Of a stretch of DNA of 64,000 bases, positions 1,486 to 57,542 are shown in pieces. The DNA lies in contig OZ176050.1 of assembly GCA_964247055.1 (NCBI GenBank), positions 4,526,001 to 4,590,000 on the forward strand. The letters run 5' to 3'. The notes under the pieces are model-generated. The model did no database searches, was not told the DNA's origin, and worked only from the letters and a program-made list of their open reading frames with translations. Source of the stretch: Paragordius varius. Lineage: Eukaryota; Animalia; Nematomorpha. Every line of letters starts with the position of its first letter. The stretch's first letter is position 1. A program made the position numbers and the translations under genes.

Positions 1486-2021
1486 ATGAAGCTTTTCCTA
1501 CGCTCAGCATCTCAAAAATTAACAGTTCTTGATGTTTGCCCTGCTGATAAAATAGGAGGAGTGATAGTAAGATTTATTTTAATTTTAGGATATCACCTCC
1601 GATAGTTATGTTTCCTTGAATGGTCAACCACTAAATTCTGAACTTTCTTTTGAATCCTACGACATAAACGAGTATTCAACTGTGGATGTTTTACAACAAA
1701 TAAATGGAGGTTTGTATTTTATTATGTGATGATATTGTCTCGTTCGTATGAACTAATGATTGTTGATTAACCCTGATTTATTTCGTTTTTTATATATTTA
1801 TATGATGAAACTATTAATATTCATATTACTTTACAGGCAAAGTTCACGGATCTTTAGCTCGTGCTGGTAAAGTTAAAGGGCAAACACCAAAAGTTGAAAA
1901 ACAAGAAAAAAAGAAAGCCAAAACTGGCAGAGCTAAACGCAGAATTCAGTACAATAGGCGATTTGTTAACATTGTTGCTGACGGCCGTATGAAAAAGCGA
2001 GGCCCAAATTCTAATTCTTAA
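1486..2021 (+). CDS. FAU: Ubiquitin-like FUBI / 40S ribosomal protein eS30 fusion; exons 1486-1566, 1589-1709, 1837-2021
   Basis: Spliced product [128 protein letters not shown]. The S30 part is unmistakable. Introns are GT-AG, 22 nt (1567-1588) and 127 nt (1710-1836). Confidence 0.97.
1722..1780 (+). ncRNA. Intronic box C/D snoRNA, predicted 18S rRNA 2'-O-methylation guide
   Basis: Box C GTGATGA 1726-1732, D' ATGA 1748-1751, C'-like ATGATTG 1756-1762, box D CTGA 1773-1776. The guide GTCTCGTTCGT (1737-1747) is complementary to the conserved 18S motif ACGAACGAGAC. It sits in a ribosomal-protein intron 60 nt from the 3' splice site. Confidence 0.72.
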
Positions 2022-2364
2022 TGTTTCTTTAACTTAATAAATATTTAATTATTACGCTTTTGAAAATCAAATAGCGATTCTTAACTTGTTATCTACATGA
2101 TATTTATACTTTCAGAATAATTTTATGAGGCCTGCTAAAAATAAAAGAATCAAATTTGGCTTAATTTACTAAAATTATATATTATTTAAATATTTTATTT
2201 CTAATTTTTTAACTTTTAAATCGTTATTTTCTCTAGTGCAAAAATTCTAATTTTTCAAAATAGCTAAATTAAATTTTTTTATTTATTAATTGTTTAAAAT
2301 TTGTTTCATATGATTGTTTAAGCTAACTGCAATTTTACCTATGTTAAAATGTAATCTTTAAAAC

Positions 2365-5998: not shown

Positions 5999-6148
5999 TT
6001 AAATAATGCTTAAAAGAAAATTAGGCAATTTTCCTTCATCATTAACCTTTCCTGAAAACGATCTGGGTATGTAAGCTAAAAATCTATTTTGCTTCGTCAC
6101 AGATGCCATCAATTATAAGACTCAGAGGCACAAATTAAATTTATCTTA

Positions 6149-7206: not shown

Positions 7207-7381
7207 AAATATGCTTTATAAGGTTTTCCCTAAATATTTATGGCGCTCATGATCTATGAATAGAAATTGTTGTAAATTATTATCTATTCACATAAAATTT
7301 TATTTATAAACTGAATTACTAATAATTTCATCGATAATATATTATTATTAATAATTCATTTATAATTATTTTGGTCTAATG

Positions 7382-9038: not shown

Positions 9039-9619
9039 CACTTCGATTCAAATTGGGGTATCTAAATACCCCAGACTAAATTAAAATAATTTTTTTTAAA
9101 AACTAATGAAGGAAACGGTCTCAATTTAAATTTATACTTCTATACTGATAAATATTATATATATATGCCAAAATATCTTGATAAAATTTTGTTTTGAAAA
9201 AAAAGTTCCATCTCAAACTACTTCGACGCCATTTTTATTTTACAAAAATTTTGCAAAATATCGTCTTCATTTAATTTTAAGGGTATAACTAAAGCTTTAT
9301 TTGTATATAAATTACATCTAACATTGATAGAAATAGAAAAAGCGGTTTATATTGTATTATTTTTTAATTTTATATTATGACACATGTCACGTTGACCAAA
9401 TTTTTACCTTTCAGTTTTAGCTCAAAATAAGTAATAGCAAGTATTTTTGAATAATATTTTTTATATATTTCGGTTTATTAATGTTATATAAGTGCAAAAT
9501 TTTGCCATGGCTTCGATTGCTTCCATACTTTTTAAATTATTTGATTTTAAACAGGCCTGGGGTATCCAACTACCCCAATTTGAATCGAAGGACTAAAATG
9601 AATGTAATGTATCCAAGTG
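9039..9619 (+). mobile_element. piggyBac-like MITE family A (tandem neighbour)
   Basis: TTAA at 9035-9038 and 9620-9623; full-length 581-bp copy. Confidence 0.85.
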
Positions 9620-9734
9620 TTAAATGCTCTTTGTTCGATTTTAGTCCGAAATAGCTTATTATAATTATTTTATAATTTATAAATGATAATTTCTTTGTAT
9701 ATTATATTTTAGAAAAAACGGTTTATATAATACT

Positions 9735-12700
9735 ATGTTGTATCGATATCCCAAAATACCTAACATCAGGCAGTTTGAAAATCTGTACAAATCGGTAAAA
9801 AGCATGACTTCTATCTTGCAACAATCTTTGAAGGATTTAAATACCTCTGATATATTATTTAAAAGTAATTTATAATTTAATGTAGAAAATATATTAAATA
9901 GCCTCGTTGACGAGATATCAAGCAAAGCCTTTGATATGAATACCGAAAATAGTCGAATGTTGGAAAATATTATATTATCTTTGGATATAAACTTTTTATC
10001 ACCTTTTTGGACATTTATTGAAGCCAAATTATACGATTTTTTTAAAGATCCACATTGGTCACATATATTACAAACCTTAATTAAAAAAATTGTTCCGTGT
10101 GAAAAGGTTAGTAAATTTTAATTTTACAGAATATCCCACTGTTAACTACTTTAGTAAATTCTATTCAACAAGAATTTTATACACATCCTAATGCCTCTCA
10201 TATTATAATAACATTGTTATCAAAGTTATCTGGCTTAGAAATGGATCATCGCAATATTGAGTACAGTAAATATTCTGCCATGTATAAAAAATCATTTGCG
10301 TTAAAAGAAGTTAATGTTCCTAATACCACTGAAAACATTGTATACAACCAATGCATAAAGCTTTGTTTCCAAATCATTACAGAATTCCTGCAATATGTAT
10401 CTATCAAAGGTGTGTTAGATTTATTTTGGCATAAAAAGTATAACCAATTTAAATTAAATGACATTTTTATTTTGAGGTTCTCCTAACTTTATGTCATTGG
10501 CGAAGTTCACCCGATATGACGTTATAATTAACGAAAGCTTATTACATTAATTTAATAAATTATGAAAATTGATAATTTATTTTTTAAAATTTTAGCAAAT
10601 TTTTGCTGAAGCATAAGAAATATAAGCATGCGGAAAATCACAAAACCACCCTTTTAATTAATACCACTAAAGACGGGTTTTGCATAAAAAAATTTCTTTT
10701 TCAAAATTATTCATGAAAACACAATATGTACATCTTGTTGGCAAATAATTTATTGACGAAATTCTGACGTTAAAGAAATCATCGCGACATTGAATTAGGG
10801 ATTCTTTAATGAAAGTATTAGTAGCATGGTTAAAAATTCATTTTACGCTTTTACAAAAAATTGCCTATATCTAGCATAGTAAAATTCCAAGCCCAATTTC
10901 GGCTTTTTTGGTTCATTTTATAAACAATAACCTATTTGATCGGGCCTCAAAAATATGTTACTAGCGCAGAAAAATCGACCTTATACAAACATTGTTGTTT
11001 CAAACTTAATATTTTATCACGTATATTTGCAAATTCCATTTGATTTCCTAAAACAAATTAATTTAACATTTGTTTGAAATTTGCGTTTGATCACTTCGCT
11101 TAGAAACCATAATCATAAAATCTGATAATTAATTTTTTATATTATAATTTTTTTAATCAAAGGATAATGAGATAGGATTCGACATTTTTTAATAAGACCA
11201 ATTTGGACTAGCAATTTTTATTCGTTTTTCGTTCTATTGAAGTATTTTTTATTCGCTAAAAAACTTTTATCGTAGATATTGAAATATATATATATATATA
11301 TATATTAATGTAACACTCTTGATTTTTCTAATATAGTATTAATCGTATATGTGGATTTATATTGCCAATTAAAACATTTCTTTCGCTATTTTATATGTAG
11401 AATATTACTCCAATCAACATTTGGGAACGATCGTTGAATCATGTATTCTTGTGTGCTATAAATCTTTGTCAAATCCTTTAATAAACGAATCCAATTTATC
11501 CAAATTGATTAAAATACTTAAGCGCATTTTGAAGGATTGGAAGATAAATTTTGTTGAAACCAAAAAAATCACCAAGTATGCGTATTTTCAATAATAATAA
11601 AACATAATAAATGTTCTGTTTATTTTTATTTTGCTCGCATTGCTAAATATAATTGGTTGATATATATATTATTTTAACTAACATCCCCATTATTATAGCC
11701 CCTACAAGTAAAAATTAGATGGAGCTTATTCAGGGCACCATAAGTTGATTTATAAAATAAAATTAAAATGAATGCATTTTTAACAGATTATTGAATTATG
11801 ACTCTATTTTCGGTCATACAAAAATTGAATGATTAAAAATCAATGAGCGTTTTTTAGTTTTTTTATTTTAAAATACCTCGAATTTGAGTCATTAAGCAAT
11901 TATATAATCTATTTTCCAAAATATTTAAACTAACTTTTGGTAGCTACCTACCCTAAAATCTATAAAGTTAATTAAAGACATGCCCAAATTTTTATAATTA
12001 CAATATTGCGCATTTTTATTTGTAGCAATTACTTTATTCAATCATACCTCACTTAATTAAAAAAATATGGTCATAGGAATGATGGGAAAACCATCATCAA
12101 ATATACTTGTAAAGATCCAGATACGGTGTATACAAATACGTATGGTTCACACATCACACAAATTTTGGTTGAAAATTGTGTCGTAAACTTTGATGCAACA
12201 ATGTTAAACAGGAAGAAAGCAAGCATCCGCATAATTGATAAAATGCTCAAAATAATTGCTAAAATGTTTATGGCGGAAAACATAACTGATTTTGTGATCA
12301 ATCCTACGGCTAACTATGTTTTTCAAACTTTTTTGATTAACGTAGCAGTTCAACCCAAACTTATATCCCCAAAGGTAGGTTTATAATTTAGTAATATATA
12401 TATATATAAACATATTATATACACCTCATATTCACATAAAAATTACGTATATTATCGTTTGTGCAAATTATTTCACTATATTACACGTAAATTCATACAT
12501 ATTAGCTCATTTATATTAAAGGCGATTGCTAAAATTTTGTTTTTTTTTTCAACATCTCAGAAATTTAATAATCTTTCACAACAATTGATGAGTGCCTTAA
12601 ACGCCATTTATGATAATGGTAATTTTGGAATTTTGGTTGCATACATACAATGTTGCATACGACGGTGTCATTCCCCACAAAATAAGGATAATAAATCTCT

Positions 12701-15700
12701 CCAACATTTAGAACAATTCTTAATAGTATTAATCTATTTTTTTTGTTAAAAATGAATATTTTGAAATCAAAACCTAATTAGTAAATATATGTTTTTTTGC
12801 GCATATTTTAATATAAATTTTAAACCTTAATTTTTAAAAGAACTAGTGAGTATTTGGTAGGTTACCTATAATTTTAACAATTTTAATCGTATAGGTTATG
12901 TACTAAATTTCTGGATCAAAAATATGGATTTTTTTTATAAAAACTAGTATTTTATAATTCTTTGATATTCTTTGTAAACATCAGCAAGTTAATAATAAAA
13001 TTTATAATGAATTTTTGTTAGATACAAAAATTAACTTTTTTAAATTAAATTAAAATGCTATAAAAATAAAATATTTGTAAAATAAATATATCAATCAATA
13101 TTTAGGCATTAGATGAATTAACAATGTCCAAATGGTGTTGTGATCGTTGCATGAATCCAACTTTTTTCCGCCGATTACTTTATATGAATAATGAGGGCTT
13201 TCGAAACAAACATTTTAAACGTGGATCCAAACTAATAAAAAATAAAAAGTTGAGGATGGAATTAGGACCTTTGAGCGATGATACTCAAGTATTAATTTAT
13301 TATTATATCCATGAATATATTTTTTTGAAAAAATTTTTTGAGATATTTTAGAATTGTTGTAGGCTTACTTTGCATTTTTTTATCAATCATGGTACTCAAC
13401 ATGAATTAAATGCCATTTTAATATTTACTTGGACTGTAATATTCAAAAAAATTCTGGATTATATTAATATACTATTTTTAAAAAATGTATATATATGGAA
13501 TCTTAATTAAAAATGTGATGAGTATTCCAAAGAATTAATGCAGTTTGTGTCGATATTTTTATATGTGTATTTGCCTACTTTTATTTTACGCGACTTTATT
13601 TCTTTAATAATTTCATTTTTTTATTTCATACATTAATACATTAGAATGAACATAAGCCTCATTCTATAACATACCATGGTTCACGTATATTGCAAACTGC
13701 TTTAGATATTGGAAACAACCAAAACGATTCTCTATCAGCTAAGTAAAATTATTATCATTTAAAATATTTAACAGTTGTTGATGGATTCAAAAAGGAATTA
13801 TTTTATAATTCTTAAAAATGGCCCCTAAGTTTATATATACCAATAATTTGTATATTATTTCCATTTAATATTTTTCGTATATAGCCTTTTGCTAAAATTA
13901 TATTCCGTTTTTTATAGCTTTTGACATATTTTTTTTTAAATACTATTTTATAATCATTGGTTATAATATTGATATTATTTTTAGAACTAAGCTTACAGCA
14001 GACAAAACCTCGTTTAATACAACAGTTCAGTTGCGTAGCCTTATCAAAAAACTTATCTGGGATCCGTTTTGTCAGGAATTAGCTTCCGACAAAAATATTG
14101 GTAAAAAACCTTACAATGAACAAATCATATACCAATTATGCACGAGTGACAAAGGAAGCCATATTATAGATATATTATTTAAAACTTTCAACGGTAATAT
14201 AATTTTTGCATTTTTTCGCACAAAATAGCCAAATTAATTGATTTGTTAATTTTAATTTAATTTAGATAATAGCCAATTGCTATCAATGGACGAACAAATA
14301 TCATTTATAGAAAATTATATACAGGTATTTTCCATATTTTATTATTTGGATCATCAATGCATTAAGGTTTGAAACGATGGCTAAATTGGAAATCTGTTTT
14401 TACTTGAAAAATTGGTTCTAGTTTCAATTTTTTTTAATTTTGTTTTCAACACTGTTATGAAATTCAATCATTTTACATTTTATAAAGCTTAAAGCTAGTA
14501 TTTAACCCATTTTTCATCTAATTAATCAAGTCATATATGAAATGACATAATATTGATTAGTTGTCATACTGTTATTCAACTTAAAATATATATTTGTTTA
14601 TTTTATATTTACTATATTTATATAATCAATAATTAGGTATTGAATTTGGTTTATAAAAATACCGTTGTTATTGTCACATAAATATTTTAAAATTATTTAT
14701 TTACTCTTTAGCCCATATTATTACATGTGGCAGTTGATAAATACGGGTCTCGGATATTTGATCACATTTGGGATTTGTATGGAAAAGTTAAACAATCAAA
14801 TCCTTCAACAAATTTGCGTTTACAGCTAATTAATCCTTTGTTACCTCATTTGAGTGCAATGAGAAGTATAAATTATTAAATTACTTTATTTGAAAAATTA
14901 ATGTTAGATATATTCATTCTAAGTACAGGCTTTTATTGCTTTTAATTACTGTGACATTGAAACTTTTTGACCTTGTTTGTATTGCGGGTTAAATACGGGA
15001 AGCACATATTAATTAATCACGAAAACTTATTCTTCTTAAAATTTTATCATATTTATATCGGATAGGACAGTAAATTTTTTAAATCGGTAAAGTTTCCCCA
15101 TCTATTTGCTAATAATTCAAAAACTTTTTTTTTCATTTTTCCAAAGTGTAGACCGGCGAAAGATTTATAACGATTAAACATTTTAGATAATGATATATTT
15201 CAAAAAATATTTTATATAATATGTCTCTAATTTTGTATATATTGTTAAAAATATGCTAAATTTTTTGGCAAAAAAGGTCTTTTAGTTTTACCGTAATCCA
15301 ATGATAATTCATTTTAAGAAATTCGAAAACCTTGTTTTTTTAATGTACTACAAAAAGCAGTTGTGATTACTGTATTAACATAGGTTTGAACACCGTTTAA
15401 ATTTATTACAACGAATTTACAATTTTAGGGTTTATAGTAGTTTTTACAAAAATATATATTATTGTAACCAATTATCAATATATTCTGTAGAGTTAACAAT
15501 AAAATCCTTTATATCAAAATAATTTTGTGTATTATCACGAGTTTATGTCATGAAATTGAATCAACATTGACCAAAGTTTTTAAACAATGAATGTTTTTAC
15601 TAAAATCAACTGTACTGCCATTTATACCATATTTATATTTTTATTTTTTATCAAATTTTATAAACGTAGTAATACAACACAAATTATTTTATCTCATAAC

Positions 15701-16373: not shown

Positions 16374-19300
16374 TCAATATATTACTTTATTGCTATTCCT
16401 TATGTTGGGGTTGGCTGATTTCGATCTACCATTAGCCACCACTGTATGATTTTCTTTATTGATACAATTGATGGAGTTGGATGTTTCGGCATTTAATTTG
16501 TATATATCGAAGGCGGCCTCCTTTATAGCCGTAAAAAATTGGTCCAAAGCTTCAAAAATGTGAGATAACTTTGAATAGCAAAGCGTTTGGTGTTGATCAC
16601 CAATAGGTTTAACATTGACTTGCATATTAAGTCCCAACAATTTACATAAATGGTTCAACTGCAAAAGAAAAGTATGCGAAAGTTTTAATAGTAGAGTAAA
16701 TCCAACTAAGTTTTCTTTTTAAGAAATGTACAAAATTTGATAAAATTTACACTTTTAGGCCATTGATTTATATCGGCTTGTGTCTAATTTTACAACCAAA
16801 AAATATTTTGTTATATTAAAGCGAAAATATCGTATTACCTTTTCGTTTAAAGTTTCATATTGACTCACTACCGAATTGAATTGAGGGTAGGCCTTAATTA
16901 GAAAATTTTTCATGTTTTGTATGAATTTATCTCTTCGGTCTTGAAGCACGGGTTTTAGTGCAAATTGTTTGGTGTGGTAGTCGATTTCCTAAAAAAATAA
17001 TTTTTTTATTTTTAAAAAAAAATGTTTACAATTTGGAATAACAATATAAATTTAAACCTTTTCGATCTCTTTCAAAGAGAGTTTGATTTGACAGATGTCG
17101 GAATTCAAATCGGCTAAACTATTATATAAGATAATTATATATATATTATTATCAAATAAAAAAAATTAATATGCTTTTCACTTTAGTTTTTATTTAAATA
17201 TATTATATGATCTACTTGTGTTTTGCGGCTTGGCGTAAGGATTGGAAATTTTCATCAAATAATTTAGCAACTTTCCTTGGATCATGCATTTCCAGAGGTT
17301 TTTCTTTATTGCCTTCTCCCTTCATTTCGCTTGTGGTCATCAATAGCCCAGGTAAAATTTTATTTAGAATACTGACCACATAATGTAACATGTTTAGCGA
17401 TGGGTTAAGATTGGATTTAACTTCCGTCAATCGGTTTAAGCTTTCCAATGTGAAGGCCCAAATATTTTTGCGATATCCTCGATTCATATAGTTTCCAAGA
17501 GCTAGTATTAATTCCAAAGTTATGCGTAAAAGTCCGTTTGATTTATTAATCATTCCAACACAATTTTTGCTAACACTGAGAGATTGATTTATGTCATGCA
17601 CGGCCTGATTATAATCTATATAATAAAATATAAAATCGATTTTTCACTGAGATGCTAACTGAAGTTAAAACTATCTCTTAATTTTGAGTCGCTTTTAAAC
17701 TATTTTTAATACATTTAATGGTTTACACATATCTGATAAACAAACCGTATATGGTAATTTTTGTTTATAAAATCATTAGATTTTAAATAGCTTATTGCTT
17801 TTAAAAATAATATTTTTTATTGTAACAACAATACCTTTTATGATGAGATCAATATCCTGTATTTTTTCGGCAAATTTTTTTTGAAATACAATATGTTTGA
17901 GTTTTTGTTCATAGCGATATATTTTGGAGGTATGAAGGAAAAATCTATCTGCTAGCCCAATAACGGAATCTTTGCCATGTTGGTTAAGCAGTTGCATTTC
18001 CTCCGTCGTTGGAACATATTTTAATAGCTATAGATAACATATATATAGTTATATATATATATTATTTGTATTATGTTAATTTTTAAACCCATGTTAACAG
18101 AATATTTATACTGATGCCAAGCTCTGTACAGCTACTATCATAAAGGAAAACATAATTTATTGTAGATTATAGTGACCAGATAGGCTGTTTTTCGCAGTAC
18201 AGTACTGGGTTTTCAGAAAAAAACTGCGCCTGTACTGCGCCCACTTTTGTACTGCATTTTGAAATAAAAAAATTAATCTTTAAATATACATTATTTACCT
18301 TTTATTTATTCAAAAAAAATATTTTAGAATTTAATATAATACCCTCTGTAAAAATAACCTCATAATTTGTAAAGAAATGCATTTTGAGGTACAAAACTAA
18401 TATTGGCCTATTTTTAGTTGGTTAATAAATAATTATCTGCTTGAATTATACATAAAACATATGATTACAGCCTTTTGCGCAGTAACTATAAATCTCGGAC
18501 TCTGCACCGTAAGATTCAGGCTAATGGCTCTTTCACTTAGGGCTTCGTTTAAAATTAACAAAATAATTTATGATATTTTTATATTTGTTTGATAGTTTAG
18601 AGAGTTTATCTTTTGTTATAATTATTAAACGGAAAATCATATAGAAAAAATTAAAATTTATTATATATGGCAGATGATTTCGAAATAATCTGTTTTCGTA
18701 AAAAATAAAGAGTACGATATCCATATTCATTAGGTGGGAGGTTTCTTAATTTTTTTCCTAAACATTAATTTTTATTTTTTTATACAGTTTTTAGAGTCTA
18801 TTTTTTCCTTTTTAAAAGGGGAAGGACTAAAATTGTATCCGGACTTGTGAAGGCTTTAACACTTGACAGCCCAGGGCTGACAGTGATGATGGAAAAATTT
18901 CGCAGTTTCGAGGTTCGAACTCTGTCATACAGTGTAAGAGTCCGGCGCCCTACCTACTATACCATCACGCCTCTAAACATTAATTTATATTAGTTATCTT
19001 ATTTTTAGCATAAATAAATTTAAGATATTTTGTTGAAGCGTACTTCAAACTGTTTTGAAGCATGATGGAAACTGTATAACGCTTTGAGATATAATAAAAT
19101 TCTTTTTCCAAATACGATGATGTTGTACATTCAGAGTTAAATGTTTGCTTGCAAATTTTGGTGCATTTTTGTGAAAAAACATTTCTATTTAACATAATTT
19201 TGAAAATGAACGATTATTTTAATCAAAATCCGAGTGAGAAATTAGCATCATCGAATTATATATATATATATAACATCTCGACCGTTTATATCGTTTCCAT

Positions 19301-39780: not shown

Positions 39781-40047
39781 TTAATATATTTATACTAAAA
39801 CTCAGTTTAGGGAGGAAAACTGCCCTTTAAAATGTTTAAAATATTGCACCATCATACATAAAAAAGTAAAATCGATAAAACAATTTTTTTATATATTTCT
39901 TTAGTAAAAATGATAGTTGACATAATTGAGGTCATTTTATATCACTATTGCAATTATCGGATTATAAATATATAATGAGTGCAAAAATACATTTTCTGCC
40001 TAACAGGTATTTACAGGTGTGTCAAGAAGTAATCATCATATGTAAAA

Positions 40048-42355: not shown

Positions 42356-44675
42356 CATGGCTTCTTAAACTATAAGTCGCGACCCCGTTTGGGTCGCCTA
42401 GCAAAATTTTGGGGTCGCGAGTGATAAAAATACAATTTAACAAGAAATGTTTTTTAACTTGTAAAATTATTGTCGTAAAGAAAAATATCAATCATCGTTG
42501 ATAAATATATCACAAAATCTTCGGTTCGGAAAGACTGTTTATACCAGCACTTCTATTCCGAACATAGCTATGTTATTCGGTTGTTTTAATTAAGGTTGAC
42601 GAAAAGATTGTCTCTGGGAACGTCTTTTGTAAAATAATAATTATATTAGTGGTGTGCTGATGCATCTAGTGTTGTAATTTGTCAGTGGCCCTGTAATAAG
42701 ATTTTAGTTTTCTTTTATTTATTCGGTAATTAATACAAATATAATCTGCAATATCTTATTTTTATATATTCATCGTATTTTAGGATAAAAATAATTTTTG
42801 CCCATAGATAAATGGCTGAACTTAAATATGAATGGTAATGACGCAAATGATAATCCAACAAACTCTTCTCAGACAGGACAAAGTATTGGGAAAGAGACAT
42901 CTAATGTGCGAAAAGAAAATATGATAAGTCTTTTCTGTTTCGTATGTCAATAAACCTAAAGAATATTTTGAAAGACTGTTTATATCTTTGAATAAAGAAA
43001 AGACAAACATCGAAAAATTTATAACCGTTAACGAAAATTATTTACTAGCATCATATGAAGTTTCATACTATATTGCTAAAAATAAAAGGCCATTCACCAT
43101 TGGCGAAGATCTTGTGTTACCTGCTGATATTAAAATGGTAGAAATACTTTATGGAAGAAAATATGGCGATGATATTCGAAAATTTCCTTTTTCGAACGAC
43201 ACCGACTCGACTAGAATTTCTGATATTAACAAGGATATTAATACAACTTATGACAAAAATTAAAGCCCAAAATTTTCGCTTCAGTTGGACGAAACAACTG
43301 ATTAACAAATTGGCTTGGTGTGGAATAAGCACAGATTGTGCAAGAGCGATGACGGGCAAAAATGTTATTTTTAAATCATTTTTTCAACCTGCTCATTATG
43401 ATCATATAACTTTTACGCATTACCTTATTCAAGAGAGTCTTGCAGCTAAAAAATTAGCGCCAGAATTGAACGTGCTTTAAGAGCCATCCCCTTACCAGTC
43501 GCTTATTTTCAAATCTCTGTAAGGATACGGATTCCAACTACACAACTTTGTTATTACATGCAGAAGTAAGATGGTTGTCAAGAGATCAAAGTTTAAAAAA
43601 ATTATTGTTATTAAAAAACGAGATTGAAATATTTTTTACTAAACGAAAATGTGAATTTGCTGCTTTTTTTTCAAAATGACTTGTGGCTATTCAAGCTGTG
43701 TTATTTGTCAGATATTTTTGCGAAGTTAAACGATCTTAACTTGTCTCTTCAAGGAAAACATTGCGATATATTTACTTCAAACAATAAAATTAAATTTATT
43801 CAAAAGATCAGCATTTGGAAAAGTAGCGTGGAAAAAATTCGTTCGAAATTTTTTCCAGTGTCAACAATTTTGTAATTGAGAAAATTCATTGTAAAAAATT
43901 TTATTGCTAAGACTATTGTAGATCACTTAAAAGCGCTAGAAATACAGTTCCGGACATAATTGATTTAAAAAAATAGTTTGGACCGTTTTGAATTGGCTTA
44001 AGTGAGATTGATTATCTGCCACTTAAAGCTCAAGAGGAATTTGCTGATATTTTGTGTGACTCAAACTTAAAACTATAATTCCAACAAAAGCCCTTGACTG
44101 AATTCTTGATCGGAAATAGAACTGAATTTTCCACAATCGCCGGTATGGCGTTAAATGTACTTCTGCCATTCAACACCACATATATATGTGAAGTTACTTT
44201 CTCAGCTTTAACACACATTAAATCCCAATATCGTTCAGCGAGAAAAAATGTTGAAGGGGTCTTACGTCCAGCAGTTTCAAACATTACACCCAGATTTGAT
44301 TTGTTATGCATTAAAAAACATGCACCTCCATCTCATTAAATTTTTAACGTAATCTTTTATTTGATATTTACCACCCAACTACTTGGATATATTCGAGAGA
44401 AGTGAAACGGTGAGAATCTACTTTTATTTTTGAAACCATAATAAAAACATTTCTATAACATTTTGTAAATTTCAAATTAAATTTTTATATATTTCAAAAC
44501 GAAATTTAAAATTTATATATTTTTATATGCATAAGTATATTGTTACATAATAAATATATCATTAAAAAATATTAATTTAAATATTAATTTATTTTTCTTT
44601 TATATTTGTTGGGGTAGTTAAAGAAACTCGCAATTATAAATGGGGTCGGGAATTACAAAAGTTTAAGAAGCCCTG
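42356..44675 (+). mobile_element. Decayed autonomous hAT transposon (ZBED5/ZBED8/SCAND3-like Buster/Charlie transposase)
   Basis: TIRs CATGGCTTCTTAAACT / AGTTTAAGAAGCCCTG; remnants ASYEVSYYIAKNKRPFTIGEDLVLPA, LCYLSDIFAKLNDLNLSLQG and LLPFNTTYICEVTFSAL; multiple frameshifts. Confidence 0.92.
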
Positions 44676-47646: not shown

Positions 47647-50420
47647 TCATTCATCGACACCTTCCTCAATTAAGCCTTCTTTAATTGGCTTATCCATTAT
47701 CTTAAATAATTTTCTCCAGGCTATTTCAGTGTCATTCGTAAACAAATCACCGCATGCTTGCTTCAAAGACTTTATGATAACATCCCATAATTCCTATATA
47801 TATATATATATATCACTGTGTGCAAAAAAGAGGATCATTTTGATTTAACATAAATTTTTTTCATGAGATAGCTTATGACCAGCGTATTCATTTGCCGCGA
47901 AAATTTTAGTTTGTGACAACCTAGTTATTGAAATATTTGGAGAAAATCGAAATCGGACAAAAAGTGAAAATTAAGATAATTATTGATTCAAATAATGATA
48001 AAAGTTGAGATATTATGTTTGATTATCATTTTAGACGATATTTTTAATATATAGATAGCCTAAAATCATAAAGTTAGAGTTTCTATAATATCTCAGCTCA
48101 AAAGATGGCGTTTCTTTTTTAAGACACAGTCAAATTTTTAGTTACTAGCTAAACTCACTATTAAATTTTAACATTAATATTTTATTTAGAAAAAAATTTT
48201 ATATATCAAAATAAAACTAAAAAATATTGTTTTTTATTTTTTCATTTTTTTTGTCATCTGGTTTATGAGTGTATTAGAACTTTATACTGTTTTATTTTGG
48301 AATCTTACATGAGTGGGAGTTATAGTATATCATTTATGTAAAATAGGATTTAAAAGTAGGGGAATATTAACCAACAATCCGTACAAATCCCAACAGGTTT
48401 GTTTTAACACAAATTAATATTTTTACTGGGATATGTACGGATTGGTTGATATTCCACTACTTTTAAATCCCATTTTGCATAAATTATATACTTTATTAAT
48501 CCCACTCATGTGAGATTCCAAAATAAAACAGTATAAATTTTTAATACATTCATAAACCAAATGACAAAAAAATGAAAAAAATAAAAAAAATATTTTTTAG
48601 TTTTATTTTGATATAGAAATTTTGTTTTCTAAATAAAATATTAATGTTAAAATTTAATAGTGAGTTTAGCTAGTAAATAATTAAAAAAATTATTTTAAAA
48701 TAGTTTCATAAAAATAAATTTGACTTTTGTGTGTCTTAAAAAAGAAAGGCCATCTTTTGAGCTGAGATATTATAGAAACTCTAACTATATGATTTTAGGC
48801 TATCTATAAATTAAAAATATCGTCTAAAATGATAATCAAACATAATATCTCATCTTTTATCATTATTTCTTGAATCATCCATAATTATCTTAATTTTCAC
48901 TTTTTGTCCGATTTCGATTTTATCTCAATATTTCAAAAACTAGGTCGTAAACAAATAAAAAATTTTACAGCAAATGAATTTACTGGTCATACGCTTTCTT
49001 TGCACACAGTGTATATTAAACAAATAATTTCTATCACCTTGAATTATAAAAAATGGAAAAATAAGAAATATACTGTATATTGATGAAATGAGACACCAAA
49101 ATGTGCATGCTGACGGCCATTTTGTAATAACAATTCTTCAAGGCATTCGGGATCCTCAAAATTTTGGATAAAAGAATTGATGGCATTAATAACCTATTGA
49201 ATGGCTTTTATAAATACTTTGTCAAATTATATTTGATTGGTTCTATAATCATAAAAAACCGATTTATAAATATTGATTGCATTCAAAGAACGGATATTTG
49301 AAATTTTTTTAGTAATTTCAAAACAATATAAAATTAATACATGTTGATTGCGATACTCAAAATATATAATTTTATCCTAAAATTTCAAATTTAATGTTCC
49401 AACTTATTAAGTTCTGGTTTGATTAAAAACTTGTCCGAATAAATAGTCATGTTAAAAATTAAATGGTTTAATTTAACCTAAGGAACAGCCATTTTAAAAA
49501 TTGACCCGAATTATAACATAACACTTAGTAAATAAGATCCAAACTAGAAAAACAGCGTGAACTAAATATTTAAACATGATGTGTACCACTGTCAAATAAA
49601 ATATATATCTTTTTTAATCCGTTAGCCAGGATATATATTTATTAGCAAATGTTGAAAAAAATCTTCCTGATTTTACAAAAAAATTCTTCTAATTTAAATT
49701 ATGAGCTTAACTACTATTGTTTTATAGATTTTTTAACTAAAAGAAAAGTTAAAATTATAGTTAGCGGGAAAAAGTTTTAGATGATGATTTTTATATTTCT
49801 ATTTTTAAAAATATTAATTATAGAATGTAGAAACAAACATTTTTGATAGTTTATTGTGTTTTAAGTAATAAACTTCATTTCTCAAAAATAAAGGGTTGGA
49901 ATTTAAACAAAATAAAGAAAGGTTGTATTAGAATAGACAATCAGTAAATGAGCCGAAATTCAATAAATAAAAAAAATAAATCTTTAAAAAAAATCTGATT
50001 TTTTTTATCAATATTGAAATGTTAATAATTATATACAGCAGTGGCATGAGCTTTGTATTGTCGTGAATTTGGTAAATCTTCTAAGGATATCCGTTCAAAT
50101 TTTTTGAATAAGTTTTTGTATTCTGGGTGTGCCGCAAAATAACTAAATTATGAAATGAAAAGTGGATATTAGTTCTTTAAGATACATTTCATAAATTTAT
50201 TATGCTTAGAGGTTCGCTCTAAATTTCATAATTTAGCTCTATGGCTACTTTGAAACAAATTTTTTTAATTTTAAAAACCACCTTAATTGATTATATGATA
50301 TTAAATATATTATTACTTGTTAAACACGAGAATTCCAGCACTCTTAGGGTCTTTCATAACTGGCGCCCAAGTTTTATTAATTTCTTCTATATCTTTTGGA
50401 GTTAAGGCTTCATTTGCCAT
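47647..50420 (-). CDS. Single-domain globin, 158 aa, neuroglobin-type intron pattern; exons 50420-50317, 50142-50037, 49193-49074, 47793-47647
   Basis: MANEALTPKDIEEINKTWAPVMKDPKSAGILVFNNYFAAHPEYKNLFKKF...QYKAHATAVINAINSFIQNFEDPECLEELLLQNGRQHAHFGVSFHQYTELWDVIIKSLKQACGDLFTNDTEIAWRKLF...VDE*. Trp A12, Pro C2, Phe CD1, His E7 and His F8 are present; introns fall at B12.2, E11.0 and G7.0. Confidence 0.95.
47814..49011. mobile_element. 1.2-kb foldback element with CACTG...CAGTG termini and 3-bp TAT TSD (CMC/CACTA-Chapaev-like)
   Basis: Two ~575-bp arms are near-perfect reverse complements around a ~40-bp loop (~48390-48430); TAT on both flanks; fills globin intron 3. Confidence 0.85.
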
Positions 50421-51854
50421 ATTTCACAAAAAATCAATTAATAATTTTAATAAAAAAATTTTGTTAAAAATAAATTAAAATAAACGAACGGAAAAAAATT
50501 GTGATGTCCTGCTTTTATCTTTATTATAGAAAGAAATGATATCGATAACAAATATTTGCGTTATGTATTAAGGTAGGCATACAATATCTATATCACTGTT
50601 TAAATATTACATAATTTAATGTATTAATATTTATATACGTAAAAGTATGTATAATTATAAATACATAAAGTAATATCCTAAGGATATTTCTATCACGTTA
50701 TTATGATGTAAGCATATTGAAAAATATGAATTTATTATAATAAATTTTTTGATGTTGACTCCACGCCCTTTACGTAAATGAAAAAGTTACTATTATTTAT
50801 ATTGACCCATCTTGCATTTACCCAAATATTTATAACTATTAAAATAAAATAAATTTTTAAAGAGTCGAAAAATAACAGGTCTCATAATAATTTTTCAGTT
50901 TAAAGATTTTTGAATACAAACTTATATTATTGTAAATATCTTGTGAACCATTTTTTAATTATTTTAATTATGATTAATTATGTTAAATTCAACAGTTGTT
51001 TTTAAAACGGGCTCAAAAATTAGATGGACAAAATGTTTTTGATTATAAGCCACAAATGTAATTAAAATTTAATTTACATCAAAAAAGCATTTTCAGATGC
51101 ATATTTTTAAATAATTCGTTAACTATATCGGCTTAGTTTTTGATCAAAGATATTCAAAAATCGGGAGCAAAAACTCCCGTTCTAAATTATGGGTAAAATT
51201 TTTAAACCAATATAATTTAATTCGTATTGTGTTGAATTCTTTTGTTACACTTAATTAGTTTATGAAGACCGCTGTGTAATAATATCATGTAACAAAATTT
51301 AGAATGTGTTTAATAATAACATTTGAAAGATTCAATTAGATAGAGTAAATTTGAAGCCGAATAATTAGATTATGTTAAGGTCAATGTGGTTCGTCCCGAC
51401 AAAACGGTTCGGCCAAATAATTTTTTACTTAAAATCATAGTTCCATATCAGTAAAATTGAAAATTTCATTGTTTTTTGGTCAAATAGATTTTGATTTCGT
51501 CATTTTTTTTGTTTTTGATTGAATGATAAATAGCAGCAAAATCATATAAGCCAATAAAACCTTATTGTAATTTTCTGAATTAAAAAAATACTTTTATGAT
51601 TAAAATAATTACATAAATATTATTAAATAAATTTTGTGTGTTTTTGTTGTCACAGAAAAAAAATTTGTGGTTCCGGTTATCATCCTTAAAAAATATCATA
51701 AAAACATCAGTTAAATTTAAATATTAATCATGTTATCTACCATAGCGCTCGAATGCTTTCCTTATCTTCGAAAATATGTCATGTAAATTTTGGTGATTAA
51801 ACGTTTCGTAACATTTCAGTACACCGTATATTAAAAAAAGCAGAAGCTAAACAG

Positions 51855-52511: not shown

Positions 52512-55500
52512 TTAAAGCAAAGTGTGTCCTGTCATATCAGCGGGTTTTTCAATTCCCATCAAATCTAAAACAGTGGGTGCAACATCACACAAAGCCGGGA
52601 GCTTTTTAACATCACTATCATGACTGAAATCTTGGCGTTCATGAGTCAAATTTTTGGCATCAAATTTTCGCGGACCAGTCATATAAAATGGAACTATTAC
52701 AAAGTAATATAATATTTACAAATAATTAACCATATCCATCCTTTCAATATTTGTTTTATAGTTTGAAAAAACCAATTTTTGATAAGAAAATTTTTAAATA
52801 ATAATATTTCAAATATAATTAACTGCTTATAGTATTGTCATATGAATTTAAAAAATAGACAAACATAATATGATAATCTGAAAAATGTGTTGCTTGTTGT
52901 TGACATTTTAATCATTAAATATTAATTAGTGTCATTATTTTTTTCATTTCATCTTATTTATATTTAGACATTTAGTTATAATACTCCACCTATATATTCG
53001 AATTAAGTTATATACCTGGATTACAGGTGTGTTGGGTAAAAGGACCACCCGATTTACTTAACATTTCTTCCGCATTCCCGTGATCGGCTGTCACCAATAA
53101 GGTGTAACCATTTTCATCACAAGCCTTTTCTACCATACCAATGGCTTTATCTACACAAATATTTTACATTTTATGAGAAAAGCATTCGTAATATTTTTTT
53201 CCTTAAACAAAAAAATTGTTTTAAAGTTTATTATATTTTTTAAATTATGATCTATATAGGGCCATACTTTGCAATAAGTTAAAAAATGCTTTGAGAAAAC
53301 TGTAATTTTTATTAGCCCCAAGCAATAAGTTTAATAATGTATTGATTATTTTCTATTTAAAGTAACGCGGATATTAATAATATAATAGCGTGTGAAACAA
53401 ATATAATTTACCTGAACACCAAAATTAACAAATAACAATGATTTCTATAGCCCAATTAATAAATAAGGCGTTAAACAAAAATATGAAATCAAAGATATTT
53501 AAAAAAACACGTGAAATTATATGAATTAATACCTGTGGCTTCACACGCAATAACGGCAGCATCATAGACCCCAGTGTGGCCAACCATATCTGGTGGGGCA
53601 AAATTGCACATAACAAAAGGGTACTTTTTGCTTTTGATCGCTTCACACATCTTATAAGAAATTTTTTTAAAAAATAATAAAAATATATAATTCTATTGTT
53701 TTGGAAAATCCAAACAATGATCATACAAAAAGCATCGATAGCATATATACCCACGTTATATGAACAAAGTGAAAATCACTTTTTTATTTAAATATAATGG
53801 TGTGATATATCGTTATATAGATTGGGTTTGATAAGGATGAAAATATCAGTCTATTTTTTGAATATATTTCATGTGGCATAGAATAAAATAGCATTAAACT
53901 TTATCTTAATGTAAAAAAGTTGGTTAATTAATAAATAACTTTAATATTTTTAATCCTTAATAATGTTATTAACATTATAGAAAGCAAATTTTATGAGTCA
54001 ATTGCGTTTTATTTAGGTGCAATAAATATTGGTAAAACGCTTAACTCAGTTATGCCTAAAATGATAACTCTGTATTTATAAGCCGTCACACCAGTTATTA
54101 TACTTATTGACGGATGAAAAATCTAACCTTACTATTCAAGTTTTATATCACAATATCAGATTATCAATAAATTCCCTTTATTCCTTACTATTGTAATGTA
54201 ATTAACAAATTATATGAGTATAGAATAAAATAAGTAAATTTTTTGTTTCAAAATTATTACAGCTTCGGCAACACCCATACAACTCATTTCGGGCTGTTTG
54301 TCATACGTGGGCACTTTGGGTGAAGGGATCATTTTACGATCCTCGTGAGGGAATTGATCCTCCCTTCCGCCATTAAAGAAAAACGTGACATGTGCATATT
54401 TTTCAGTTTCTATCACAAAAATCATAAAAGTAATGTTGTCATTTTAATTTCAAGTGCAAAATTAGCTTAAAATATTTAATATATCGAACTATAAATTAAA
54501 TAATAGATTCTAAAGCTAACGTAAAATATTTAAAATATATAAATAAATTTATTAAAATTAATAATGTACCAGCGCAATGAAATTGATTCTTGTTTTTAAC
54601 GCTTAACCATTCTGCCAACACATTTTTATTAAAGACGGGGGGAAACAGTACAGGTAACTTAAATTCCTTCTTGTATTCAGTCATACAATAAACTCCCTAT
54701 GATTTAATTTGTAGTGGTATTAAGCACAAAATTTGACAATATTTAGTAAAAAAAAAGAATAATCGATTAAAATAAAGATTTTGTCAAAAATAATCTATGG
54801 GTAAAGAAAAAAGATGGGGTATCAAACAAAATTAAACTCTACCATTTGCACTTCAAGAGTACCCTTGAACACTTCAAGTTGGTCCTTAAACATTTCAAGT
54901 TGGTCCTTAAACACTTCAAATTGGTCCTTGAACATTTCAATTGGTTCTTAAAATTTTTCGTTTTAAACAAAATTTTTGGATTTATTTTTTTATTTTATTA
55001 TTTTTTAACCTAATTTTCTATATTTATTAACTAGTTTTTTGTTTCAAACTATTTTTTTCCAATTTAACAAAATTATTAACTTTTAAATGTTTCCAATGAA
55101 AAATTGTGTATACAAGAAAAATTATATATTTTTATTATGTGTTATAATTTTATAAATATCCAAAATAATTTTAAGAAAGTAATAAAGATATTCGGTTTCT
55201 AAATGATTAAAAGTTGATATTAATTTATGTTAAATAATAGAAAATAGGTTAAAAACGATAAAATATATGAATGATATATGATTGATTGATAAAAGTTAAA
55301 AATAAATTAAAAAAGTCAAAGGACCAATTTAAAATGTTCAAGGTCACTCTTGAAGTGCAAATGGTATATATAAATTTTTAAATGTTTAAATACCTCCTTA
55401 AAGTCATTTTCATTAAAAAACAATGCGATAAAAATTAAAAACTAACCAATTTTTGCGGGATAACTTCAGTTGAAAATTGAGGTTTAAGTCCCAAACATTC

Positions 55501-57542
55501 CACAATTTCTCGCATACGATCGGCTCGGTAGTTGAAAAACATAACGGTATCATTATCTATAATTATATCACATAAACATAAATTTCAGGTAAAAAATAAC
55601 GGTTAATTAAAATATACCGGTAATTCGATTATTTCCAGATTTATCTTCAATAATTAGCGGCTGCAAAAACTCGTCCGTTTGTTTCTTATCACCCTCTTGA
55701 TTGTACAGAGATTCCATTTTCTAGGTTTAAAAAACCATATAATTTAAAAGCCAAATTAAAACATTTTTTAACGCTAAATGCTATTTTATAAAAAAAAGCA
55801 ATATATTACGCATTTTTAATAATTAGTCTAATTTATACGTTTTTAAGATTTTTACATATATATATATATATATATAAACCAGGCATATTTTTTCAGGTAT
55901 GTTTCATATATGATTGTCAGAGTTCAATTAAAACATTATCCTTATATTTACTAAAAAATTATATAAATTGTCCATATTTTGTTCAAAAAAATAAAAAAAA
56001 TTAAAAGAAACGCTATAAACAAATAAATATTTTTACCGAAAGAACATCCTTGAATTCAATTTTTGTCCCCTTGCCTTGTGTAAAAGCTTCATAAGCTATC
56101 TTAACACGTTCCCAACGCTTATCACGATCCATTGCAAAATAACGACCAACGATAGTTGCTAAATGACCATATTTTAGCTTTTGGCTCATGTAATCATCCA
56201 ATTGTCCAATATATTTCACTAAAATAGGTATATAGTTAAAAGATAATTAATTTATATGAATAAGAAAAGCGCTTAATTTTTCATATAAAATATAGAGTTT
56301 TTTGTCAAATTTGATAACAATTAAGCTATTATTATTAATCGTCACTATTCTATCGACTTTAATAACCAGATCCTTATTTAACTTTATACAAACGAGTAAA
56401 TCAACGATTAGTATCCATAATAACTTTACATCAAAATAATTGGACCTAATATATAAAAAGGACAAATAAATTAATATTTTTAAATATTATATGATAATGA
56501 AAGATTTTGTCAATATTTAACAGTTTTATGAAATGGATAATTAAAATGCCACCACATGAGTTGGTTTAATAAAATATAATATGCATATCATAGAAAACTT
56601 TATTCTATATAAAACAATAGTGGGATCATAAAATTACCAATTTATTATCAGTATTATTATGTTGACATATTTGTTATTTATTAATTATAACTATAAAGAA
56701 TTTAACCGTCGGTCCGGTTATTATATTTTAAAGTTCAAAAACTCAACTCTAATCTTTCTAAATATAATTTCTTGTTTAATTTCCAGGAATTCTTAGGTTA
56801 TGCAGCAGCTTTTCAATAAGATGACTAGAGAAAAATAACGGAAAAAAGTAATTTACCAGCACTTGTGGGGAGTGTATCTCGACCATCTGTTATAGCATGA
56901 ACATAGGTGTGGGGCACTCCATGCTTTTTGGCCCCTTCCAAAAGGGCATACAAGTGATCTATGTGAGAATGGACTCCACCATCACTAACCTAGATATTTA
57001 ATATATTTTAAATTTAAATATAAAATGTAAAGCTGTAAACAAAGTAAAATTTACACTTGGCTAATAATTGAAATATTAGAATAGTTTACAAGGGTATGCA
57101 ATGATGTTAAGTCTTAAATAAAATATAATATATAAAATCTCAATACATACCAATCCAATAAAATGTAGTTTTCCAGTACCATTTTTGGCACGGTCACAAA
57201 GTTCCACAAATTTTTCAATGTTAAACAAACTTTTATCTTCAATAGACATATTGATACGGACAATGTCCTGTAAAATATATAAAAAATTTACTTGATAAAT
57301 GACTCTACCAGCACCAATATTTAGATGTCCAACTTCACTATTACCCATTAAGCCTTTCGGTAGACCAACAGCTAAACCATGAGCGCAAAGTTTGAGAGCT
57401 TGTCCTTCTCTCTGACTTAATTTATCCATTACTGGTGTATTTGCATTTGCAATTGCATTACCTACTAATTAATATAAAGCAAACCTTCTTTTTTATCCAA
57501 CAAACCCCATCCATCGATAACTATCAAGCAAACGTTGGCCAT
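52512..57542 (-). CDS. gpmI: 2,3-bisphosphoglycerate-independent phosphoglycerate mutase (iPGM), 527 aa, 12 exons
   Basis: Exons 57542-57485, 57461-57292, 57267-57151, 56989-56857, 56218-56037, 55720-55618, 55556-55447, 54696-54570, 54409-54261, 53650-53533, 53150-53016, 52693-52512 total 1584 nt in one frame. Motifs [70 protein letters not shown] and [11 protein letters not shown] are present. Confidence 0.98.
54840..55366. mobile_element. Foldback MITE family C in iPGM intron 7
   Basis: TACCATTTGCACTTCAAGAGT / ACTCTTGAAGTGCAAATGGTA; 21-bp TTGAACACTTCAAGTTGGTCC-type units. Confidence 0.8.

Follow-up and report, generated by a model that had tools for sequence, protein, structure and literature searches.

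Can segments of little more than twenty nucleotides be genuine spliceosomal introns in an animal genome where other introns reach more than a kilobase? The question is raised by a 64,000-nt stretch of DNA (hereafter the window; GC 26.6%, close to the 26.93% of Gordionus montsenyensis) from Paragordius varius (Nematomorpha), a bilaterian with an AT-rich and repeat-rich genome. A sequence-only reading had placed six GT-AG introns of this kind in four genes, namely FAU, a NOP9-like PUF gene, clarin and iPGM, and all six segments were found at the claimed coordinates, bounded by GT and AG and measuring 22, 21, 23, 25, 23 and 24 nt (Table 1). We consider it likely, with a probability of about 0.8, that the six are U2-type GT-AG spliceosomal introns that have shrunk to 21-25 nt. 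For five of them this status is well supported: the frames close, homologues align without gaps, and intron positions are common to other species, while the first intron of the NOP9-like gene (micro-intron a) is less secure, as a later ATG may serve as its start codon.

Table 1. Coordinates of the exons and introns of the four genes (positions in the window)
Feature	Positions	Strand	Properties
FAU exon 1	1486-1566	+	Start codon, N-terminal strands of ubiquitin-like domain; MKLFLRS... aligns with homologues' MQLFVR...; A+T 62%
FAU micro-intron	1567-1588	+	22 nt, phase 0; GT...AG; A+T 86%; TTAAT present
FAU exon 2	1589-1709	+	Remainder of ubiquitin-like domain, ending GG; aligns to C-terminal half of FAU ubiquitin-like domains
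FAU intron 2	1710-1836	+	Ordinary, 127 nt; GT...AG; splits Gly codon ahead of KVHGSL
FAU exon 3	1837-2021	+	Ribosomal protein eS30 part and stop codon
NOP9-like putative exon 1	9735-9864	+	ATG and 43 codons within 61-codon open stretch; weak coding signal
NOP9-like micro-intron a	9865-9885	+	21 nt, phase 1; GT...AG; A+T 86%; TTAAT; in-frame TAA
NOP9-like exon 2	9886-10106	+	First PUF-type repeat; PF22493 PUF_NOP9 profile positions 9-60, weak
NOP9-like micro-intron b	10107-10129	+	23 nt, phase 0; GTTAGT...TTTTACAG; A+T 83%
NOP9-like exon 3	10130-10483	+	Open frame, donor site not fixed; PF22493 profile positions 91-151
Clarin exon 1	40048-40288	+	ATG-initiated open frame; first membrane helix, loop with N-x-T site; A+T 63%
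Clarin micro-intron	40289-40313	+	25 nt, phase 1; GT...AG; A+T 88%; TTAAT
Clarin exon 2	40314-40499	+	PF25807 Clarin-2, 29.2 bits (cut-off 27), profile positions 92-140
Clarin intron 2	40500-41020	+	521 nt; GT...AG; removal closes protein frame
Clarin exon 3	41021-41484	+	Includes stop codon; from gene model
iPGM exon 1	57485-57542	-	Aligns with N-termini of iPGM homologues
iPGM micro-intron 1	57462-57484	-	23 nt, phase 1 in Gly20 codon; GT...AG; TTAAT
iPGM exon 2	57292-57461	-	Contains catalytic GNSEVGH motif
iPGM micro-intron 2	57268-57291	-	24 nt, phase 0; GT...AG; without in-frame stop
iPGM remainder, exons 3-12	52512-57267	-	Stop codon 52512-52514

The predicted consequences of retention, a stop or a frameshift in every case but the second iPGM intron, were borne out segment by segment. 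Open reading frames alone are nevertheless not evidence for splicing in this sequence, because a strict scan of the window showed no enrichment: GT..AG stretches 18-32 nt long, rich in A+T and linking a pair of frames with 30 or more codons each, numbered 20, against 12-28 for control dinucleotide pairs. Support comes from homology. No spliced protein of the same species was found in the two protein libraries compared.

Both iPGM micro-introns are firmly predicted on this basis. The full gene model has 12 exons and 1,581 nt, with GT-AG at all introns, and encodes 527 aa with no internal stop; the frame closes to this length only with both segments removed. Nine introns of ordinary size (161, 638, 316, 61, 750, 160, 610, 382 and 322 nt; intron 8 at 54410-54569) make up the remainder. 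Over 326 aa the model shares 53% identity with P0288, its identity to nematode iPGM is about 67-75%, and its spliced exons 1-3 give a 110-aa alignment to homologues without a gap. Retention of micro-intron 1 causes a frameshift and stops, its removal yields ...KKEGNAIAN, which aligns gap-free with homologues, and a 20-nt alternative at this junction would introduce an extra residue not seen in homologues. Introns of 517 nt (L003) and 981 nt (L001) occupy the same codon in the same phase in two other animals. Micro-intron 2, if retained, would insert eight amino acids in frame within the conserved GRVIYQ/DIVRIN motif, which its removal leaves intact; this insertion occurs in none of 120 homologues, nor in structure 5kgn of the C. 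elegans iPGM. In the nematode-like P0077, the genomic ORF departs from homology exactly past ...IYQ and continues V-N-F... as micro-intron 2 does; a longer intron is present there at the same site.

In FAU, both flanks of the micro-intron match FAU homologues in different frames. Exon 2 shares 50% identity with P0177 over 32 aa, and the 60-aa translation of exon 3 matches eS30/FAU proteins with identity up to about 90%. Retention shifts the frame and then meets a stop, and the sole other short GT-AG option lies at 1561-1588 (28 nt). In L007, a metagenome eukaryote, an intron of 72 nt, also in phase 0, lies no more than about three residues from this site. Counting against the call, 6-9 residues are missing from the ubiquitin-like domain at precisely this putative junction. 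The spliced clarin model, for its part, comprises 296 aa with four membrane helices, and retention of its micro-intron shifts the frame towards a stop at 40351-40353. Other GT-AG pairs of 16, 19, 31 and 43 nt would also restore the clarin frame, with A+T of only 56-77%, but they cut exon-like sequence. Since the homology-supported exons on either side are in different frames, the micro-introns of FAU and clarin, together with micro-intron b of the NOP9-like gene, are each needed.

Insertions made during sequencing or assembly, or small insertions in decaying pseudogenes, would stay in the RNA and could mimic such segments, which consist of AT-rich low-complexity sequence prone to long-read assembly indel errors. 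We regard this as very improbable. Errors of that type are 1-2 nt long, whereas the segments here measure 21-25 nt and are bounded by GT and AG, and the 24-nt iPGM segment is in frame and hence not a frameshift artefact. Moreover, all four genes acquire full-length frames upon removal of the segments (the donor site of NOP9-like exon 3 not being fixed), two of the sites match intron sites in other species, and the stretch as a whole is present in several DNA runs from different samples and studies. Still less credible is excision from DNA rather than RNA, as in ciliate internal eliminated sequences or nematode germline-limited DNA. The shortest eliminated sequences of Paramecium do overlap the micro-introns in size, but the boundaries here are GT...AG and not TA...TA, the positions and phases coincide with spliceosomal introns of other animals, and the motifs at both ends are the same as those of the long introns.

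The NOP9-like gene is where a mis-call among the six would chiefly be expected. Its exon 2 has weak matches to solved PUF domains, and the PF22493 match in exon 3 is colinear with exon 2 and with the later exons at 12057-12383 and 14712-14876. A join is required at micro-intron b because the frame of exon 2 stops at 10119 and that of exon 3 opens at 10115; retention produces a frameshift and a stop at 10119, and other GT-AG choices would delete exon sequence. Micro-intron a, by comparison, has the lowest support of the six, since a start at ATG 9936, just ahead of the Pfam match, would make it unnecessary. Translation may thus begin at ATG 9936, with the upstream 43-codon frame being a chance or upstream ORF. 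This finds some backing in the PUF_NOP9 match, which starts one residue past that ATG at profile position 9, in the composition of exon 1 (A+T 70%, against 75% upstream), in a codon-position bias that does not favour the claimed frame, and in the frequency of chance ORF-joining GT..AG pairs in this sequence. Against it, retention of micro-intron a brings in an in-frame TAA, the 61-codon open stretch of exon 1 terminates 8 nt into the segment, the segment resembles the others in length, composition and TTAAT, and no other GT-AG pair would join the two frames. NOP9 proteins also normally carry an N-terminal extension ahead of the PUF domain. We hold a mis-call of one or more of the six to be somewhat unlikely, yet the most plausible of the alternatives considered here.

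The six segments share several properties. Their A+T content is 78-88%, with 52-73% in the flanking exons, and the claimed boundaries are the shortest and most AT-rich GT-AG option at each of the six junctions among the alternative pairs compared. The motif TTAAT occurs in five of them, about 15 nt from the 5' end; it is expected in roughly 15% of windows of that size, so that five or more out of six has P of about 4e-4 in what is a post hoc test (n = 6, motif seen first). Of 10 long introns, 6 also contain TTAAT, at a distance of 19-35 nt from the 3' end. Three of the six micro-introns end in TTTTAG or TTTTACAG. The 5' and 3' signals are loose and common to the micro-introns and the long introns of the same genes. 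Every micro-intron is the first or second of its gene (iPGM two of 11, NOP9-like two of at least eight, FAU and clarin one of two each), for which we calculate a chance of about 2e-4 (n = 6). Neither this placement nor the later start codon for micro-intron a figured in the sequence-only reading.

We suggest that some of the micro-introns at least are ancient introns reduced to tiny size, other introns in the same genes having kept 61-1,700 nt. They would be removed by the ordinary spliceosome, with the whole intron recognised as a single unit through a loosely defined 5' site (GT followed largely by A or T), a UUAAU-like branch site and a short, T-rich 3' end (...TAG or ...ACAG). Nearness to the cap may permit recognition of such minimal introns, which would explain their clustering at gene 5' ends. 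The same clustering hints at a special requirement, and no space remains for a pyrimidine tract: from the putative branch A it is about 13-16 nt back to the 5' end and no more than 5-12 nt on to the 3' AG. A dedicated or modified route, which the sequence-only reading inferred from lengths too small for the usual simultaneous U1/U2 footprint, might be envisaged, for example U2AF-free recognition of the SPF45/RBM17 type, or stepwise rather than simultaneous binding of U1 and U2; SPF45 replaces U2AF at human short introns with truncated tracts (10.1101/784868). However, such a route seems unlikely, as myxozoans with 22-27-nt introns retain the canonical U2 branch-pairing region and U2AF1/2 (PMC13644364), and tiny and long introns share their signals here. 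No spliceosome components were found in the window, and an Rfam search of positions 1-54520 gave no matches.

Some 6 of the window's 31 introns are tiny, and the other 25 or so range from 61 to 1,731 nt. Two size classes, one of 21-25 nt and one of ordinary or repeat-bearing long introns, thus appear with good support to coexist in one animal genome. Their coexistence with kilobase introns inflated by transposable elements, as proposed earlier, seems real, but such introns are few in the window: a single formin intron, about 1.7 kb long, contains 616 nt of dispersed repeat, and the remaining long introns measure 61-889 nt.

Nematodes, the likely sister phylum of Nematomorpha, offer the first comparison. 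Introns of C. elegans have a mode near 47 nt and a 3' site UUUUCAG, with no strong branch consensus, and we know of no report of nematode introns below about 40 nt. The ends TTTTAG or TTTTACAG and the iPGM intron 2 site common to a nematode-like sequence recall this system, from which the P. varius window differs in having a separate 21-25-nt class. Human ultra-short introns (43-65 nt; PMC4463651) likewise combine truncated pyrimidine tracts with very long neighbours in a large genome (PMC4463651; 10.1101/784868), but they are twice as long, rare and without a 5'-end pattern. In Paramecium, Stentor (15-16 nt) and chlorarachniophyte nucleomorphs, as summarised in PMC13644364, a U2-type spliceosome removes introns of 15-25 nt with the branch A at a fixed short distance. 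Unlike the window, these are unicellular systems in which essentially all introns are tiny, with neither coexisting kilobase introns nor a reported restriction to 5' ends.

The list of short-intron lineages given with the initial claim is out of date, as it omits the myxobolid myxozoans, which hold the animal record with a median of 22 nt (PMC13644364). In the searchable literature, animal introns below 30 nt are reported only for these and for Dicyema. Dicyema japonicum, a parasitic bilaterian, resembles P. varius in its GT-AG introns well below 40 nt (PMC6736024; PMC13644364). Its genome spans 67.5 Mb with GC 36.7% and a mean intron of 38 bp over all genes (PMC6736024), and the P. varius window departs from it in GC content and in its two size classes. 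The myxobolids (Henneguya salminicola, Thelohanellus kitauei and Myxobolus rasmusseni) share with the window GT-AG introns of about 20-27 nt in an animal, at conserved positions with conserved exons on both sides, and weak splice-site motifs. Weakly conserved A residues, at a distance from AG that rises with intron length, are a further common feature and suggest that the branch site is placed relative to the 5' end. The tiny introns of the myxobolids have RNA support from Iso-Seq (PMC13644364). In these myxozoans, tiny introns are the norm (medians 22-27 nt), with short neighbours in genomes that are compact (about 20-200 Mb) and evolve fast (PMC13644364), whereas in P. varius the predicted tiny introns form a minority beside repeat-carrying introns of 61-1,700 nt and all lie at gene 5' ends.

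All six segments were found at the positions, and with the GT and AG ends, that the sequence-only reading had given them (see table), and their A+T content is 78-88%, compared with 52-73% in the adjoining exons, in a window with 26.6% G+C. The effects claimed for their retention were also reproduced: the frame shifts if the segment of FAU or clarin, the second of the NOP9-like gene (NOP9b) or iPGM intron 1 is kept, and the first segment of the NOP9-like gene (NOP9a) brings in an in-frame TAA. iPGM intron 2, if kept, remains in frame without a stop and adds eight residues. The reconstructed frames show that these segments would have to be removed from the mRNA for the four genes to encode their proteins. 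On homology and reading frame, the micro-introns of FAU, clarin and iPGM together with NOP9b are most probably real GT-AG introns (probability about 0.85-0.95), and NOP9a is probably one as well, with distinctly less confidence. To read them as spliceosomal introns is well supported for these five and plausible for NOP9a.

Positions of the micro-introns and of other features discussed in the text (window coordinates)
Feature	Position	Strand	Remarks
FAU micro-intron	1567-1588	+	22 nt, GT...AG
NOP9-like micro-intron a	9865-9885	+	21 nt, GT...AG
NOP9-like micro-intron b	10107-10129	+	23 nt, GT...AG
Clarin micro-intron	40289-40313	+	25 nt, GT...AG
iPGM intron 1	57462-57484	-	23 nt, GT...AG
iPGM intron 2	57268-57291	-	24 nt, GT...AG
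Clarin model	40048-40288 / 40314-40499 / 41021-41481	+	296 aa, four membrane helices
Formin gene, 3' half	16377-23358	-
Formin FH2 exons	21109-21405, 19759-20007, 17779-18027, 17215-17643, 16758-16988	-	FH2 domain
Globin gene	47650-50423	-	four exons
Open frame near formin	26086-27144	-	353 codons
Stretch antisense to NOP9-like gene	9680-10117	-	146 codons, stop-free
iPGM intron 6	55557-55617	-	61 nt
Inverted repeat pair in iPGM intron 7	54840-54909 / 55305-55371
Relatives of the intron 7 repeat	28091-28194, 33941-34014		at about 28.1 and 34.0 kb
hAT-type transposase remnants	42928-44336, 35719-37061	+	frameshifted
Dispersed repeat copies	9451-9651, 30037-30270, 39615-39827, 58733-58903, 60780-60944, 61082-61231, 62202-62429	both

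Chance occurrence was assessed by an ORF-joining scan of the window, which looked for AT-rich GT..AG segments (18-32 nt) without which two frames of at least 30 codons each could not be linked. The scan returned 20 such segments, as against 12-28 for composition-matched control dinucleotide pairs, and some of the 20 are plainly non-coding, for instance one antisense to the clarin gene. Since the GT..AG count lies within the control range, reading frames alone are no proof and each case was judged on homology; discovery of further micro-introns from ORFs only was rejected as unreliable for the same reason.

The strongest case is that of iPGM, which was rebuilt on the minus strand as 12 exons separated by 11 GT-AG introns (23, 24, 161, 638, 316, 61, 750, 160, 610, 382 and 322 nt in order), giving a stop-free frame of 1,581 nt that encodes 527 aa and ends in TAA. 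Removal of the segments had been proposed to restore the frame or a conserved motif, and the spliced N-terminus indeed aligns without gaps to homologues across 110 residues. If the 24-nt segment is kept, an 8-residue gap opens in all of the homologue matches (120/120), and likewise against the C. elegans iPGM structure (5kgn), 13 residues past the catalytic GNSEVGH motif. Intron 1 is in phase 1 within the Gly20 codon, and a 20-nt alternative for it would add one residue that is absent from every homologue. The window iPGM is nearest to nematode-like sequences. The ORF query against the protein collection did not find a spliced protein of the same species (best match 62% identity). On this evidence, iPGM introns 1 and 2 are firm as predicted introns.

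Both iPGM sites have counterparts outside the window. An intron at the same codon and phase as intron 1 measures 517 nt in one animal genome from the ENA assemblies (L003) and 981 nt in another (L001), both with about 35% GC and an iPGM protein about 65% identical; these two loci have most other exon boundaries in common with the window and do not possess intron 2. A genomic ORF fragment (P0077; 75% identical, and very near the C. elegans sequence) is unbroken at the intron 1 site, and its homology ends exactly after ...IYQ, continuing with V-N-F... much as the translated intron 2 segment does. The DNA of one relative (P0129) is intronless. The matches in L001, L003 and P0077 imply that both iPGM micro-introns occupy sites of ordinary introns in other animals.

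Splicing out its micro-intron and a 127-nt intron 2, FAU encodes a ubiquitin-like domain and eS30 fusion of 128 aa, in which exon 1 resembles the N-terminal strands and exon 2 the C-terminal half of FAU homologues, in different frames. At the junction the helix-loop falls 6-9 residues short of its length in most homologues, and the join there does not allow a residue-by-residue check. The nearest match to the ubiquitin-like domain comes from an AT-rich metagenome eukaryote with 27% GC, whose FAU gene (L007:2680-2960) has a phase-0 intron of 72 nt about three residues or less from the micro-intron site; this intron lies within the ubiquitin-like domain, and there is none at the eS30 junction. 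When the eS30 exon was searched against 1.84 billion cluster representatives, none of the proteins found carried the window's ubiquitin-like domain. Judged on its frames and homologues, the FAU micro-intron is well supported. So is that of clarin, where exon 2 scores above the Pfam Clarin-2 threshold; its exact boundaries are probable. Several other frame-restoring GT-AG pairs exist at the clarin site, and these are 56-77% A+T and would remove exon-like sequence. Clarin exon 1 found no relatives in the protein collection.

In the NOP9-like gene, the PUF_NOP9 profile (PF22493) has weak, colinear matches on four separate exons, and exon 2 weakly resembles solved PUF domains; exon 3 has no match in the protein collection or in PDB. 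NOP9b lies between two of the profile-matching exons, whose frames have no more than 4 nt in common, and this makes a join necessary there. For NOP9a, frame closure is the sole support from the homology tests, and the putative exon 1 has no clear coding signal. Moreover, an ATG at 9936 stands one residue ahead of the Pfam match, and a start there would make NOP9a unnecessary; this segment is the weakest of the six. The strand opposite exon 1, NOP9a and exon 2 carries a 146-codon stop-free stretch, which covers the disputed exon and is probably a codon-usage by-product of AT-rich coding sequence.

Codon and phase are matched for iPGM intron 1, the site for iPGM intron 2 and, within about three residues, the phase for FAU; no relatives of the NOP9-like and clarin genes were found in the protein collection. 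The positions of two tiny introns are homologous to those of long introns in other genomes, and at least two represent old introns, of 0.5-1 kb in other animals, that have shrunk. Ribosomal frameshifting or bypassing was rejected, as it leaves unexplained both the GT-AG ends and the intron positions common to other species. Elimination at the DNA level, as for the internal eliminated sequences of ciliates, was discarded because the boundaries are GT/AG and not TA/TA. The segments also differ from the U12 type (conserved RTATCCTT at the 5' site, branch site of the TCCTTAAC type), their 5' ends being GTAAGA, GTAATT, GTTAGT, GTTATA, GTTTGC and GTAAAT instead. An Rfam search of positions 1-54520 gave no match.

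Tiny introns make up about 6 of the 31 introns in the window (2/11 in iPGM, 0/3 in globin and none in the FH2 part of formin). A length of at least 61 nt is seen in the remaining iPGM introns, in the second introns of FAU and clarin, in the later introns of the NOP9-like gene, in the three of globin and in those of the formin FH2 part. The coexistence with kilobase introns that had been noticed earlier holds: the longest intron, in formin, measures about 1.7 kb, 616 nt of which is dispersed repeat. The formin gene is represented by its 3' half, whose introns span about 120 nt to 1.7 kb and include no tiny one. A 353-codon open frame without Pfam match may be a formin N-terminal exon or a separate gene. 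Globin (Pfam Globin on exons 2 and 3) has introns of about 170, 830 and 1,250 nt, and its lack of a tiny intron indicates that a micro-intron at the start is not universal among the window's genes. A single intron of the window, iPGM intron 6, lies between the 21-25-nt class and that of at least 120 nt. Intron 7 of iPGM contains an inverted repeat pair with short tandem units inside, and relatives of this repeat occur about 27 and 21 kb away; the pair resembles a foldback or MITE-type element, whose insertion would have lengthened the intron.

The long intergenic stretches are rich in dispersed repeats and hAT remnants. Two remnants of a hAT-type transposase weakly resemble the hAT dimerisation domain, and several of their frame changes could reflect decay or further tiny introns. 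The dispersed repeat copies, on both strands, have the common translation ...PGVSNYPNLNRRTKMNVLYPSVKC... and probably represent a non-autonomous transposon, whole or in part; one copy lies just 5' of the NOP9-like start.

All six tiny introns rank first or second in their genes, for which we calculate a chance of about 2e-4 given the intron counts per gene, with the caveat that tiny introns are easiest to notice near start codons. iPGM and the NOP9-like gene were checked over their full length. Tiny and long introns alike begin with a loose 5' site, in which GT precedes mostly A/T, and have short ...TAG or ...ACAG 3' ends. The motif TTAAT (yUnAy-type) is present in five of the six, and its second A lies at 13-16 nt from the 5' and 5-12 nt from the 3' end. 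It is found in 14-17% of same-size windows of long introns, so that the probability of at least five in six is about 4e-4, a post hoc value with n=6 that is generous because the motif was noticed before the test. In 6/10 long introns the distance of TTAAT from the 3' end is 19-35 nt, a usual one for a branch site.

The ordinary U2-type spliceosome would remove the tiny introns by recognising each whole intron as one unit, with the spacing to the 5' site determining the branch site. The cap-binding complex helps U1 to bind the first 5' splice site, and closeness to the cap may therefore aid recognition. The modified spliceosome suggested by the sequence-only reading is a possible alternative. 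SPF45 can replace U2AF at human short introns; myxozoans retain canonical U2 and U2AF with introns of the same size. Long and tiny introns within one transcript offer a natural comparison for the minimal requirements of spliceosome assembly.

Default minimum intron lengths are about 40 nt in AUGUSTUS-type gene predictors and 20-70 nt in many RNA-seq aligners. Programs with such a minimum would frameshift or truncate genes with micro-introns. Low BUSCO completeness is reported for horsehair-worm genomes (71.6% in Gordionus montsenyensis), as is a large-scale loss of universal genes (cited to Cunha et al. 2023); part of this could stem from faulty annotation. The word 'intron' is absent from the Gordionus genome paper, and a literature search for horsehair worms and introns, which did not extend to Cunha et al. 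2023, returned nothing relevant. The Gordionus genome resembles the window in composition (26.93% GC compared with 26.6%) and is repeat-rich as well (64% repeats). None of the protein searches brought up a named nematomorph protein.

Animals were long thought to be devoid of introns below 30 nt, and these are now published in two parasitic lineages with compact genomes: a 2026 survey of 51 animal genomes reports them only in myxobolids and Dicyema, and names neither nematodes nor Nematomorpha in its main text (PMC13644364). The window contributes a closed 12-exon iPGM model mixing tiny and long introns, exact position-phase matches to long introns in other animals, a clean pattern of placement towards the 5' end, and a negative control by which reading frames alone are no evidence. 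A broader reading, which we regard as tentative and rather unlikely, is that introns below 30 nt arose in animals a third time independently, and here for the first time without a link to genome compaction. The 21-25-nt introns would then be a discrete class restricted to a gene's first or second intron in a large, transposon-rich ecdysozoan genome, with the branch about 15 nt from the 5' site and recognition through cap closeness or a dedicated factor. If this were true, many horsehair-worm genes would be disrupted at their 5' ends by gene finders that enforce a lower limit on intron length.

Genome-wide miniaturisation of the Myxobolidae or Dicyema type was rejected, since most introns are not tiny and the non-coding regions are long. 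The assembly (1,679 windows in 29 pieces) exceeds those of Dicyema and Henneguya in size. Dicyema japonicum (67.5 Mb, 36.7% GC) has a mean intron length of 38 bp and Henneguya salminicola (74.9 Mb in 93 contigs) a median of 27 bp, whereas most introns in the window are long; on GC content, genome size and intron lengths, neither species suits as the source of the window. The tiny introns are of the same size class as those of myxobolids and Dicyema, but they occur as a separate class near gene starts in a repeat-rich genome with mostly ordinary introns, and their presence there suggests that intron shrinkage can be separated from genome compaction.
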